From Macrostomum lignano (lineage: Eukaryota), in assembly GCA_002269645.1 (NCBI GenBank), contig NIVC01002254.1, forward strand, positions 73,868 through 137,867: DNA of 64,000 bases, in the 5' to 3' direction. Below the pieces are notes generated by a model. That model was not told the DNA's origin and ran no database searches. It saw only the letters and a program-made list of their open reading frames with translations. Numbering within the stretch: the first letter of the stretch is position 1; the number at the start of each line of letters is the position of its first letter. Shown in pieces: positions 3,620 through 64,000 of the stretch. The translations under genes were made by a program, and so were the position numbers.

Positions 3620-5898
3620 TTAGCACAGCGGAGTGTCAAACAGCAGGTAGTTCTTGAGCACAGTCGGCAGCGGCAGCTCGCCCACCGACTTGGGCAGTGG
3701 AGCTGGAAGCCGGTCACGAATCAGCACCCGGCACAGGCGCATCAAGGACGTGCTGGTCAGGCTGAACACCAGGGCCTTTTGCTCCGGCCCGATCCGGGAC
3801 ATTTTAGCGATGGCAGCTCGGTCAACCTTGACGGCGGCGGATAATAGCAGCTCGGCCAGTTGAGCATTCTCCGGATTGTTCAACACGCGGGACAGGTGGC
3901 CTTGGACACCGTATCTGAGAGGGGGCATTTAATTCGTAAATGTATATGTAGCTTATTGAAAGCAAATGCAAAGAGAAGTTGTAATTTTGCACCTTTGCAT
4001 CATCCTGGCACTTCTACCTGTACATCCTCATGATGTATTATAAACTGATGTATTGTAAATGTACAGAGACCATCATAGACTCACCTGCATCCTCATTCAG
4101 ATCACCATAGACTCACCTGCATCCTCATTCAGACCACCATAGACTCACCTGCATCCTCATTCAGACCACCATAGACTCACCTGCATCCTCATTCAGACCA
4201 CCATAGACTCACCTGCATCCTCATTCAGACCACCATAGACTCACCTGCATCCTCATTCAGACCATAGACTCACCTGCATCCTCATTCAGACCATAGACTC
4301 GCCTGCATCCTCATTCAGACCACCATAGACTCACCTGCATCCTCATTCAGACCACCATAGACTCACCTGCATCCTCATTCAGACCATAGACTCGCCTGCA
4401 TCCTCATTCAGACCATACATTCACCTGCATCCTCATTCAGACCATACATTCACCTGCATCCTCATTCAGACCATCATAGACTCGCCTGCATCCTCATTCA
4501 GACCATACATTCACCTGCATCCTCATTCAGACAACCATGTACTCACCTGCATCCTCATACCGACCATAGACTCACCTGCATCCTCATTCAGACCATACAC
4601 TCACCTGCATCCTTATTAAGACCATAGACTCATGCTCATCCTCATGCATCCTCATGCTGCAGGCCCTGTATCCACGCCCTTCATTACCTAAGAGCATGAA
4701 CTGAAGTCAATCCCCAAGGTATATTAAAAAGTGAGCAACTGACATTCTCTCACCTGTCCAACAGAGTGTACCCGCAAGCTCCCTGACAAAGATTGATTTT
4801 GGCTCCAAACTGTACCAGCAGGTACACAGTAAAGGCGTCGAGCTCCTCGTTGCAGCCGAGGTATTCAACTAGCGGCGGCAGGCAGGGTGCATCCAGGCAG
4901 ATCTTGTCCTTGACGTTGCTATGCTGATTCGGCCGCGCCCCGGCGTCTAATAGCAGTTTGAGCAGCACGTTGCGACTCTCGAGTCGAACTACGGAGCACA
5001 GAAACTGCAGCGGGTAGATTTCGTATCTGCCCGACTGGTTTGGCCGATTCGGGTCGGCTCGATTGCGCAACAGGCAGCACAGCATAGGCGGACTGTTTAG
5101 CTTGATGGCCAGCTCCAGCGCTGTCGTGTCGTTCTGCACAAACTGGTCGGGATCGGCGCCGCTGTTCAGCAGCAGCTGCATAAGGTCGGTACGCCGGTTC
5201 TTCATCGCGTAGAACATGGCCGACTTGCCGCCGAAAGCGAATGACGAACGTAGGTCGACGTTGGCCTTGTGGCACAGCAGCACCATGGCGGCTTCCAGCC
5301 GGCTCTCCTTACAGGCGCGCATCAGCGGGCTGAGGCCCCAACGGTTGAACGTGTCCGGATTGGCTCCGGCTCTGAGCAGCAGCTCGAGGCAGAGCAGATT
5401 CTCCAGGCTCATCACCGAGACCAGGTCGCCCATGAAGTAGCGACAGTTCGGATTGGCGCCAAGCCGCAGCAGGGCCTCCACGCACAGCAGGTGGCCGTTC
5501 TCCACAGCGTAGGACAGCGGGTCCTCGACCGTGTCCTCGGCCGGGATGTCGGCGAAGTCCGCGTCGCGACGATCGTAGCAGTTCGGGCGCTGCCAGTGCA
5601 GGCGAGCGCCGGCCTCGGCCAGTGCCACCAGGGCGCCCGTGCTGCCCCGGCGAGCGGCGATGTGAATCGGCGACAGTCCCTCCTCGTCGGCGCAGTTCAG
5701 ATTGCAGCCGTGCTTAATCAGCAGCTGCAGCAGCTGCAGCTTGTTGTAGTGAGCCGCGTAGTGCACCAGCGACATGCCTTTGACGCGGATCTGGCTCAGG
5801 CAGACGCGGCCGCTAGCCAGGAGCAGCTGAAGGTCAGCCGCTGGTTTGTCGCTGCGCACCGCGTAGGCAAACAGCTTTGTGAAGTCGGCCGTTTCCAT
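3620..5898 (-). CDS. Ankyrin repeat and SOCS box protein (ASB family, Cullin5 E3 adaptor), about 479 aa; exons 5898-4754 and 3914-3620
   Basis: About 8 ankyrin repeats (e.g. GLSPIHIAARRG, GLSPLMRACKES, LLLRAGANPD). Phase-2 intron with CAG|GTGAGA donor at 4753 and TCTCAG acceptor at 3915 restores the frame. C-terminal SOCS box TSLMRLCRVLIRDRL...ELPLPTVLKNYLLF (BC box plus LPLP Cul5 box). Confidence 0.9.
4070..4650. repeat. 29/32-bp minisatellite (ACCATAGACTCACCTGCATCCTCATTCAGACC)n inside the ASB intron, about 18 units
   Basis: Direct periodicity; fills most of intron 3915-4753. Confidence 0.93.
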
Positions 5899-6542: not shown

Positions 6543-18944
<12,402 letters not shown>

Positions 18945-39347: not shown

Positions 39348-60927
<21,580 letters not shown>

Positions 60928-62728
60928 ACTTTTTATAGATTTTTATTGTTTGTTTTTGTTTGCTGTTGTGAGAATCGCTTTTCCTTCGAATACTCTGGTA
61001 GAGACAAGTCAATGTAGCGGTGAAGCAGGAGGTCGAGCGGACACGAAGTCATTGTGCTAGTAGCTAGAACTCCCAAATGCATTGTTCAGTAGTAATAATG
61101 TATATGTCACGATGGCCAATGCTAGTCGTAAGTTTAAGGACAAACTAAAATCTATCTAAAATGGAAAATCTGCAAAAATCTATGTTCTAAGTCTAGGCTG
61201 TGTTATTGGTAAAGACGGAATCTAAAGAAAGTGGTAAAGTAAGCCAAATAGTTTCTAATTGTTGTATACTTTTGTTCTGTTTCATTAAAAGGCAAAATGA
61301 ACTCTCTCATGCATATAAGTCGTACTTATAGTAGTTTACCGCATTGCTGTGTAGCCGTCAGCTTACCTGTGCATGCCCCTTTGTGTGCGTGTTCGTGCCG
61401 CTGGCCTTATCGAGACCTTCAGACTGAAAATATTTTTCGCTTTGTGCTCATACCCCATTCCCTTCTTTAGTGCTCAACCTACTGAGTCAAAGTAATGCCA
61501 GACAAAACTCAGACTCCTTTTGTGCTTAACTAGAAAGAGTTACTGTAAGCATTGCATGCAGGTCGAAACTGTCAATTACAGGCCAAAATGTCTTTTGAGT
61601 AGAGGAGCTGTCTCTGTGTGCTTTGTTAGAATAGATTAACTGCATGTATTAGTCCGTGTCCTTCCAGACCACGCCTGGATAGCCAATTTAGATTGTGTCG
61701 CAAGGGTTGCCGCGCATTTTAGCTTACTTCATCAAATTTGTTCGCGTTCAAGTTGCTCTGAGGCCTTAAAGTTGTTCCCTTGTTAGTCAGGACAATTCAT
61801 CATAGCCGGGTTAGATTGACAAAATCCTAATTGCCCAAAGGTCCAAGTCAAATTCGTAACCAGCATAGGAGTTTAAGTGACATTAGGCATTTCCATAGTT
61901 TGTCATAGGCGGAGAAATTAGTACTCGGAGAAATTAATTATTAACATCATTACAGTACACAGTATCATGGCGAACAAACTCCTTTATACTCAATAATACT
62001 CCCGAACTAATCCGTCATCCGTTTAGCACGCGTTCAACATTCTGAACTTCGATCAGTGGATTTATAGGCTCAAAAACACCTGTCAAAGAAGTGAGAAATC
62101 GTTAGGTTAAGAATGCAACCAACGGTAGAGAAGTAGAAGGCAAGCGATTTGCCGGAGCCGCAGCCACTCCATGTCTGATAGAGTCGCTTATGGCTGCAAA
62201 GGCTGAGTTGAAGACAAAAAGTGGCAACACGATGCGGGGCTACTTGAGTCGATTGAATGGCCTCCGTATCCAGCCTCCCCCCCCAGCCTGTTGAGAGCTG
62301 TAGGAGAAGGTCTTCACTAGAAAAATCAATGCTTGGCATCGGACTTTTTATGGAGCGTTACAGAGGCCGCTCTTCTCTTGTGGCTCTCTCTGCTTGAATC
62401 CAATCTACTACATTACCTTGTACGATTAACATTTAAGGTTAGCCTACTAATTACTCTAAGCGGTACAATAGCAGCTTAGAAAATGATTTCGGCGATGATT
62501 GACTGCAACACCAATAATAAAGTTTATATGCGCACTCAACAGTTGATTTGCAGAAGTTTGGATCGACTACGGATGCTGAGTTTAATTAGGTTATTCAGCC
62601 AACAGAGTGGCTCGCATGGCAATTTACACGCTTGCACGACATTAACAACTATTAGGAAAATAGGGAACTGGCCAGTGAGTGGTTACTTCAAAATGTATCT
62701 TGTAGCTCGGGCTATTGTTGTTCTCTAT

Positions 62729-63183
62729 TCATTCTTCGTTGCGCTTCTTCCAGTCGTAGGTTCCAGGTTGGACAAAGCGCTCTTCCAGTCGTAGGTTCCA
62801 GGTTGGACAAAGCGCTTCTTCCAGTCGTAGGTTCCAGGTTGGACAAAGCGCTTCTTCCAGTCGTAGGTTCCAGGTTGGACAAAGCGCTTCTTCCAGTCGT
62901 AGGTTCCGGTTGGACAAAGCGCTTCCCAGTCGTAGGTTCCGGGTTGGACAAAGCGCTTCTTCCAGTCGTAGGTTCCAGGTTGGACAAAGCGCTTCTTCCA
63001 GTCGTAGGTTCCGGGTTGGACAAAGCGCTTCTTCCAGTCGTAGGTTCCGGGTTGGACAAACCTCTTTGAATGGGCCGTCTCGCTGTCATCGAGTGAAGCA
63101 GTAGAAGCCGCACCACGAGCCGATCCAATCTCGAAACAGAGAGCGCACATGGCAAGCAGTACCACTATCAGAGCAGGCCTCAT
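62729..63183 (-). CDS. Multi-copy neuropeptide precursor: signal peptide, acidic spacer, 9 x FVQPGTYDW separated by KR/KKR; three small deletions break the frame as given
   Basis: MRPALIVVLLAMCALCFEIGSARG signal, then ...AHSKR, nine 36-bp units encoding FVQPGTYDWKKR, then NEE-stop. Units at 62919-62952 (-2), 62884-62918 (-1) and 62777-62811 (-1) are short; restoring 4 nt gives a 152-aa ORF. Confidence 0.85.
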
Positions 63184-64000
63184 TGCTACGAGTTTTGTTC
63201 CCTATTCACTGAATCTCTCCAAGCAGATTTGCAGATCTTTGCAACTTCCTAATAAACTAGTTGAAACTGGCAAATGATGCAAGCAGTCTTCTATTTCCGA
63301 TGGGCACCTCGTTCATATGTACCTCCCTGTCGACTAAAACTCATTGGCTAAATCCACAGCAAGGACTCTGAGCTCATGTCACTGCCAATGCAATGAACCA
63401 ATGGGATCAGAACTAGCATGCACTCATTAATGGAACGACAAAATCGATCAAAAGTAGCCAAAAGCTTTACGCCTGGACAGTTAAATACAAAAGGAGGGAA
63501 TCATAGCCATGCGTAGAATAAAGAACTCAGATTAAATGGGTCTGAAGTCGATGCAAGTGAATTAATCAAGATACTCGTATTATGACAAGACGACCATAAA
63601 GAATAATCGAAGGACCTACGCTCGTATTTTGAAGTGCCACGATTCAAGCTAGTTTAAGACATTTAAAGTTCGGGAATTAGCCGTAGGTTAGTCTATCGTG
63701 GACAAGATGGACAAAATCTCAATATTAATGAAATCAAGCACTGAGACCGTTCCAAACGGATGTGTTCAATTAGCTAGCTGCATTATTACAAAAATTCTAA
63801 CGTGCTTGAAACGTGAGCTCTTGTCCCGTAAGATTTGATCTAATAAGACCCGGCTTCGACGCCTCTAAATCCTGCTTTGTGATCCCTACCCGCGATACGA
63901 CATTCGCCTGCGCGCATTATGTTTCAGATTGAAGAATTCATTCGAGCCGCCCTATCGTCTCATCACACGCAGGTCAGGAATTTGTGCGACGCATCAGCAA

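Follow-up and report, generated by a model that had tools for sequence, protein, structure and literature searches.

Our analysis of a 64,000-nucleotide stretch of the Macrostomum lignano genome (the terminal 64 kb of contig NIVC01002254.1 of assembly Mlig_3_7, GCA_002269645.1; "the window" denotes this whole stretch) indicates that the minus strand near its right end encodes a lineage-restricted, non-amidated multi-copy secreted propeptide precursor, annotated only as a hypothetical protein. In the reading that we favor and consider probable, this is a small gene for a secreted precursor that would be cleaved into copies of the non-amidated nonapeptide FVQPGTYDW, the frameshifts in its repeats are artefacts, the family to which it belongs is restricted to M. 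lignano, and the peptide likely acts as an intercellular signal.

The minus-strand frame opens with an ATG at 63183 and reads MRPALIVVLLAMCALCFEIGSARGAASTASLDDSETAHSKR before it enters a tandem array at 63060-62741. From the N to the C terminus, the translation is laid out as a signal-peptide-like segment MRPALIVVLLAMCALCFEIGSARG, an acidic spacer, KR, and FVQPGTYDW-KKR units. When three deletions in the array are repaired, the open reading frame (ORF) extends from the ATG at 63183 to the TGA that follows NEE, ending at 62729. These are exactly the limits given in an earlier reading of the bare sequence (the original prediction), and the prohormone-convertase precursor architecture proposed there (signal peptide, acidic spacer, KR, and repeats of a peptide plus tribasic site) is present in all its parts. 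The features of the locus, in window positions, are as follows.

62729-63183, minus strand: whole coding region with the three deletions repaired, a predicted 152-amino-acid precursor with terminal 9x FVQPGTYDW-KKR and NEE-stop
63112-63183, minus strand: putative signal peptide, approximately residues 1-22/24, MRPALIVVLLAMCALCFEIGSA(RG), called from hydropathy and small residues at -3/-1
63061-63111, minus strand: acidic pro-region spacer AASTASLDDSETAHS, then the first dibasic site, KR
62741-63060, minus strand: nine 36-nt units, each FVQPGTYDW plus KKR, starting at 63060, 63024, 62988, 62952, 62918, 62883, 62847, 62811, and 62776
62919-62952, minus strand: unit 4, 34 nt, with AA gone from TGG-AAG-AAG-CGC between 62926 and 62925, a -2 frameshift
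62884-62918, minus strand: unit 5, 35 nt, with 1 base of the Pro codon CC[C/T] gone at about 62908
62777-62811, minus strand: unit 8, 35 nt, with one A gone from AAGAAG at about 62782, a -1 frameshift
62729-62740, minus strand: C-terminal tail NEE plus TGA in the frame of unit 9, identical in the sister loci L001 and L004 (described below)
62725-62727, minus strand: TAG that ends the 152-amino-acid ORF as sequenced
62581-62586, minus strand: ATTAAA, a candidate polyadenylation signal about 145 nt 3' of the stop, from sequence reading only

The leader has a basic n-region, a hydrophobic core of 13-14 residues, and a GSA/ARG cleavage motif, with Kyte-Doolittle 9-residue means of up to 3.4 across residues 3-12. 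Its sequence is identical in L001 and L004, and an analogous leader is found in the paralogous proteins P0002 and P0006. The pro-spacer ahead of unit 1 comprises 17 residues (the 15-residue acidic spacer plus KR); in P0002 the spacer has diverged, with its acidic character and the KR kept. Two of the features by which precursors of this class are recognized, an N-terminal signal peptide and short repeats bounded by dibasic or tribasic sites, are thus found here.

For the array at 62741-63060, the repeat finder TRF reports a 36-nt unit present 9.0 times at 96% matches, and the core ACCTACGACTGG is found in 9 places, where shuffles give an expectation of 0.23. In order, the unit lengths are 36, 36, 36, 34, 35, 36, 36, 35, and 36 nt. 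The deletions in units 4 and 5 total 3 nt, which restores the frame and leaves a junction that reads ...YDW-EALCPT-GTYDW, where EALCPT replaces KKRFVQP; the deletion in unit 8 shifts the frame away from that of unit 9 and the NEE stop. As sequenced, the uninterrupted ORF is 62725-63183 (152 amino acids), with the end KSALSNLEPTTGRSATKNE followed by its stop codon. The original prediction, which listed nine copies and a terminal NEE-stop, is therefore correct for the nine 36-nt units, but it had silently repaired three frameshifts: the ORF as sequenced holds 7 intact copies of FVQPGTYDW, and NEE lies outside its frame. The prediction was accurate in two further statements, namely, that no Gly precedes the basic site (the Trp is followed directly by KKR) and that the intact units vary at a single synonymous site. 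This sole variable nucleotide is the third base of the Pro codon, which is CCC early (units 1 and 2, as well as the frameshifted unit 4) and CCT distally (units 3, 6, 7, and 9, as well as the frameshifted unit 8). The basic site is lost by frameshift in units 4 and 8; elsewhere KR stands before unit 1 and KKR after the units.

The origin of the three deletions was judged by comparison with other copies. The M. lignano genome contains at least three near-identical copies of the gene, of which this locus is one. Locus L003, encoding the protein P0003, is the base-for-base reverse complement of the last 11,289 bases of the window, and two other contigs (NIVC01001021.1 and NIVC01000415.1) carry colinear copies with approximately 98% identity. 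These two sister loci, and the part of the window in which they differ from it in an unusual way, are as follows.

L001 (Mlig017890.g3): 8 units in an uninterrupted ORF, with FAQAGTYDW first, then 7 x FVQPGTYDW and the NEE stop
L004 (Mlig017890.g1): 9 units with the CCC/CCT order as in the window; one 1-nt deletion in unit 4 shifts the frame
61000-64000 of the window, no strand assigned: contig-end stretch with indels in excess of substitutions versus the two sister loci, from the three-way alignment

The three-way alignment of the window, L001, and L004 covers window positions 57887-64000 (approximately 6.1 kb), in which the singletons of L001 amount to 41 substitutions and 6 indels and those of L004 to 15 substitutions and 7 indels. 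Between window positions 61000 and 64000, 5 substitutions and 23 gap openings separate the window from L004. At 63500-64000, L001 and L004 show no difference across 502 bp, and the window departs from each of them by 10 indels with no substitution. Against L004, the ORF in the window shows 4 indels and 0 substitutions. The deletion in unit 4 is a singleton against both sister loci; a deletion of the Pro-codon type seen in unit 5 occurs in L004 also, but in unit 4. Deeper in the contig, at 57887-60999, the pattern is back to one dominated by substitutions. The gene starts 817 bp from the end of the contig. According to Wudarski et al. 2017 (PMC5730564), Canu was used to assemble Mlig_3_7 from PacBio data and Pilon to polish it, and duplicated blocks that are at least 95% identical account for 180 Mb of the assembly. 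Short reads have no unique placement in such blocks, and polishing with them is unreliable there. An indel-to-substitution ratio of this kind is unlike evolution and like an under-polished long-read contig end, and we consider it most likely that the three frameshifts arose as long-read consensus errors left uncorrected at the end of the contig and are not mutations. If they are artefacts, the real gene would contain nine in-frame units ending in NEE-stop, just as the original prediction had reconstructed it. The consensus of the window at 61000-64000 is poorly polished in general, and any ORF there should be read with caution.

The same deletions could instead mark a genuine pseudogene, i.e., a decaying redundant homeologue from the recent genome duplication of M. 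lignano, in which case the frameshifts would be real and the full peptide set would come only from the sister loci. The frame is broken three times in the window copy and once in L004, tandem repeats are prone to slippage, and the 180 Mb of duplicated blocks leaves redundant copies free to decay. We nevertheless regard a pseudogene as unlikely, since indels without substitutions, both in the ORF versus L004 and in the 500 bp of flanking sequence where the sisters are identical, are the signature of long-read error, and the locus lies at the very end of its contig. Even as sequenced, moreover, the seven intact copies stand in one ORF behind a signal peptide.

The sister loci bear as well on the history of the repeats. 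Unit number (8 versus 9) and the CCC/CCT pattern differ among them, which indicates ongoing unequal exchange within the arrays; repeat turnover is recent, in agreement with the recent repeat expansion or concerted evolution suggested in the original prediction.

Tandem arrays are common in the window, where approximately 30 reach a TRF score of 400 or more and many give long spurious ORFs, and the 36-nt unit itself is open in five frames (all three on the minus strand and two on the plus strand). An open frame alone is therefore no evidence of coding, and these same facts speak for a non-coding tandem repeat with an accidental open frame, like the satellite ORFs elsewhere in the window. Four independent lines of evidence lead us to conclude that the frame is coding and make that alternative scarcely credible. 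First, the FVQPGTYDW frame is the only one of the five that is continuous with an ATG and a signal-peptide-like leader, and no other array in the window is so placed. Second, a diverged paralogue, L002 (BOX15_Mlig001773g8), has eight units that encode FSAPGTYDW and vary at 4 sites in the 27-nt peptide part, all of them third codon positions and all synonymous, where only 22% of random single changes would be synonymous; amino acid changes among these units are confined to K/R exchanges in the linker. Third, comparison of the FVQPGTYDW and FSAPGTYDW types shows that F1, P4, G5, T6, Y7, D8, W9, and the basic triplet are kept across synonymous differences (TTT/TTC, GGA/GGG, and CGC/AGG), while positions 2-3, the leader, and the spacer have diverged. 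Fourth, an exhaustive profile search recovered two M. lignano proteins (A0A1I8HD77 and A0A1I8IJ07) whose units are of a third type, FSAPQAFDW, apart from one FSAPHAFDW; the repeats are again preceded by a hydrophobic leader, then by a short acidic spacer and KKR. The C terminus of the peptide and the basic sites are thus common to all three paralogue types, and the deposited models of such genes are based on transcripts (see below). Greater conservation of the peptide and its cleavage sites than of leader and spacers points to purifying selection on the peptide.

The family seen so far, in M. lignano only, comprises the types FVQPGTYDW/FAQAGTYDW, FSAPGTYDW, and FSAPQAFDW, with the consensus F-x-x-[P/A]-x-x-[Y/F]-D-W followed by [KR]-K-[RK]. 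The two FSAPQAFDW entries (P0005 and P0006) exist only in an older ML2-based annotation, and both carry misleading names: one was automatically named "Coat protein," and the other is fused to an unrelated upstream model of 1,280 amino acids.

The paralogues also bear on the possibility that the product is not cleaved and is a repetitive structural secreted protein, such as an eggshell or adhesive component cross-linked through Tyr and Lys. The precursor is a short secreted protein made of a tandem repeat containing K, Y, and D, and eggshell proteins of flatworms and marine adhesive proteins often consist of such repeats. On the other hand, all units of the FSAPQAFDW paralogues have Phe in place of Tyr, so the Tyr chemistry is not conserved, and the strict [KR]-K-[RK] at unit boundaries, with KR before unit 1 and tolerance of K-to-R swaps, fits convertase sites better than Lys cross-linking. 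We therefore consider a structural protein very improbable.

The gene in the window has already been deposited in GenBank as BOX15_Mlig030851g1 (P0003), a "hypothetical protein" whose 145-amino-acid model includes the frameshifts and EALCPTGTYDW. The proteins of the sister genes are BOX15_Mlig017890g3 (P0001) and BOX15_Mlig017890g1 (P0004). The gene and its paralogues are on record as "hypothetical protein" in GenBank or as "Uncharacterized protein," or under a wrong name, in UniProt; exact-protein look-ups of the window's 152-amino-acid ORF and of P0005 returned no identical record. Gene models of Mlig_3_7 were built with StringTie/TACO on transcriptome sequencing (RNA-seq) data and with the de novo transcriptome MLRNA150904 mapped by BLAT (PMC5730564). 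The 92-amino-acid models deposited for L001 and L004 have the NEE stop and four units, all in frame. On the genome they extend over 423 and 458 nt, and they omit 144 and 179 nt of the array, respectively, as false "introns," an omission that apparently reflects repeat-collapsed short-read transcripts mapped to the genome. The GenBank models for L001 (10001-10423), L004 (10001-10458), and L002 (10001-10402) each retain 4 of the 8-9 genomic units, and the public proteins therefore understate the number of peptide copies. These transcript-based models are indirect evidence that intact-frame mRNAs exist for the FAQA-first and FVQP-first types.

Relatives were sought with word-indexed searches of 5.8 billion proteins (with a single sequence and with a 4-sequence profile), an exhaustive hidden Markov model search of 1.84 billion representatives, and a pattern scan of JGI metagenome contigs. 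With the frame-repaired precursor as the query, only two clusters were found among the 5.8 billion proteins, both from M. lignano, with P0001, P0003, and P0004 as members. Across the protein searches, the 22 matches with E<1e-3 from outside the family, of which 8 were inspected, were unrelated low-complexity repeats without periodic basic sites or a leader. The pattern scan of metagenome contigs gave 223 matches, 0 of which were confirmed. No relatives outside M. lignano were found in any of these three collections.

A text search of 8.3 million papers with the peptide strings gave no relevant match, and the texts of papers searched for Mlig017890 did not contain it. No YDW or FDW peptide strings occur in the papers of Collins et al. 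2010 (PMC2953531) and Thiel et al. 2018 (PMC6188537); the catalogue of Koziol 2016, according to a paper that cites it, covers twelve parasitic species. The peptide is probably undescribed in the literature, a judgment to which the catalogues of McVeigh 2009 and Koziol 2016 did not contribute. The original prediction had called the family apparently undescribed and had proposed a search by pattern and in published catalogues to look for a named precursor. None was matched in Collins 2010 or Thiel 2018, and relatives came from M. lignano only. The claim of novelty stands in that the searchable literature gave no published name; it does not extend to the sequences, since the gene and its paralogues had already been deposited as hypothetical or uncharacterized.

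Among known systems, the closest likeness is to the lineage-specific multi-copy peptide (MCP) precursors known from neuropeptidome surveys of spiralians, xenacoelomorphs, and flatworms, such as the spp/npp genes of Schmidtea mediterranea (PMC2953531) and other MCPs (PMC6188537), which share the signal peptide, the acidic spacer, and tandem identical short peptides between dibasic or tribasic sites. They share, too, a small intronless-looking ORF and the lack of detectable orthologues beyond a narrow clade. FVQPGTYDW differs from them in that it matches no searchable sequence, is non-amidated, ends in Trp, and is known here from sequence alone. Orcokinin/pedal-peptide precursors likewise release multi-copy non-amidated peptides at dibasic sites, and they show that amidation is not required of a neuropeptide. 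Those peptides have 13-17 residues, an N-terminal [NP]FD... motif, and a C-terminal Gly/Phe-rich end. We ruled out this family, since the units here have 9 residues and lack both motifs of the consensus, and profile searches recover no such precursors. A C-terminal Trp is shared with MIP/allatostatin-B, APGWamide, and AKH/RPCH, and FSAPGTYDW superficially recalls the F-S-P-G-W of RPCH, but the Trp of those peptides is amidated via a Gly before the basic site, which is absent here. MIP/Wamide (W-X6-W-amide) is ruled out by the single Trp per unit, with none at -7, and by the lack of Gly before KKR. APGWamide and AKH/RPCH are ruled out by the lack of Gly and of an N-terminal Gln/Glu, by the nine copies, and by the 17-residue pro-spacer before unit 1; in AKH-type precursors the peptide, with an N-terminal pGlu, is present once, immediately behind the signal peptide. 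The defining motifs or amidation signals of achatin and kinin are absent as well. The misfit to MIP/Wamide, APGWamide, and pedal-peptide/orcokinin noted in the original prediction is thus borne out by the absence of the amidation Gly or of the defining motifs. As an analogy only, yeast alpha-factor precursors release a tandem short non-amidated peptide at KR through a Kex2/furin-type protease; they are unrelated in sequence and kingdom, and the window precursor has no dipeptidyl (EA) spacers of their kind.

Matches to the Pfam families EZH2_WD-Binding and NOPS proved to be repeat artefacts, in which nine tiny 9-residue matches sum past the gathering scores with 0 stretches significant alone; the "faint" precomputed Pfam tag on the deposited protein is an artefact of the same summed-repeat kind. 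P0002 has no Pfam match.

In the processing that we propose, the signal peptide would direct the precursor into the secretory pathway and would be removed around GSA|RG or ARG|AA. Subtilisin-like proprotein convertases would then cut C-terminal to the KR before unit 1 and to each KKR, a carboxypeptidase E/D-type enzyme would trim the basic residues, and the product would be nine copies of the nonapeptide FVQPGTYDW with its C-terminal Trp as the free acid. No Gly donor stands ahead of the basic site, and there is therefore no amidation and a free carboxyl is left. The peptide has a calculated monoisotopic [M+H]+ of 1112.505 and a pI of approximately 4. The presence of nine copies in each precursor, and of the gene itself in three or more copies, implies a high output. 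From the architecture, the conservation among paralogues, and the transcript-based annotation, we infer secretion, cleavage, and a signalling role, with a releasing cell type and a receptor to match.

As to that role, the sequence suggests that the peptide is most likely an intercellular signal, either a neuropeptide or a peptide hormone, and possibly an exocrine or pheromonal product. The signalling peptide or pheromone with its own receptor proposed in the original prediction is likewise an inference from the sequence. The exocrine or pheromonal possibility is compatible with the precursor model: the processing would be the same, and the source would be an exocrine or reproductive gland (prostate, pharyngeal, epidermal, or cement) releasing a waterborne or seminal pheromone or a defensive or allomonal peptide. 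Peptides with reproductive or pheromonal functions typically have a high copy number, paralogues that diverge fast (here at positions 2-6), and a distribution confined to one lineage; neuropeptides less typically lack amidation, and multi-copy pheromone precursors flanked by KR do exist, as in the case of yeast alpha-factor. Against this, non-amidated multi-copy neuropeptides are well known (orcokinins/pedal peptides and achatin), the weakly anionic character of the peptide speaks against a cationic antimicrobial role, and the supplementary text of Macrostomum papers, searched with the gene identifiers, gave no match and nothing that pointed to any gland. We regard a gland product as rather unlikely. 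A cationic antimicrobial was ruled out as such by the pI of the mature peptide.

Several points weigh against our preferred reading of a functional precursor gene for an intercellular signal. one frameshift is present in L004 too, a locus in the interior of a contig of 378 kb; the explanation of the frameshifts by error is a statistical one, drawn from assembled sequences; the signal peptide was called heuristically, by hydropathy and the -3/-1 rule only; the relatives come from a single species, so that conservation is seen among paralogues only; and the three gene identifiers had no match in the supplementary text of the Macrostomum papers searched.

These findings raise the possibility, which we advance tentatively and at somewhat less than even odds, that F-x-x-P-x-x-[Y/F]-D-W peptides form a recently evolved signalling system restricted to Macrostomum, in which the three paralogue types would be non-amidated Trp-terminated ligands, each with its own receptor, and would serve as neuropeptides or as mating or pheromonal signals in a reciprocally mating hermaphrodite. 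Flatworm neuropeptide catalogues have largely been built around amidated peptides and parasitic species, and M. lignano is a transgenic, RNA interference (RNAi)-amenable flatworm model. A non-amidated multi-copy family with three paralogue types provides concrete candidate ligands for receptor deorphanisation and for behavioural and reproductive assays. The analysis also corrects public annotation, in which models hold 4 of 8-9 units and the frameshifted model of the window gene probably reflects an assembly error. It should be useful to specialists and will not surprise them: lineage-specific multi-copy peptide precursors are common, appearing in every neuropeptidome survey.

The window is dominated by tandem satellites, with a stretch at 8831-17399 and approximately 30 other arrays (e.g., 40574-42097 and 43711-45296). 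One satellite, with a 35-nt unit, runs to 246 copies across 8.6 kb. Such satellites give rise to ORFs as long as 2,872 amino acids in several frames, and none is evidence of a gene. Three other parts of the window match protein domains. The minus-strand ORF at 25333-26265 matches the C-terminal half of an amiloride-sensitive/DEG-ENaC channel (Pfam ASC, E=4e-19) and is probably one exon of a larger gene; it lies 37 kb from the peptide gene, and no link between the two was found. The minus-strand ORF at 4750-5898 (382 amino acids) contains multiple ankyrin repeats (Pfam Ank, E=1e-32) and is overlapped by an antisense ORF. At 50626-51951, also on the minus strand, two adjoining ORFs with DUF3504, a weak match to phage integrase (tyrosine recombinase), and a QRICH1-like domain look Crypton-derived or of the ZMYM/QRICH1 type.

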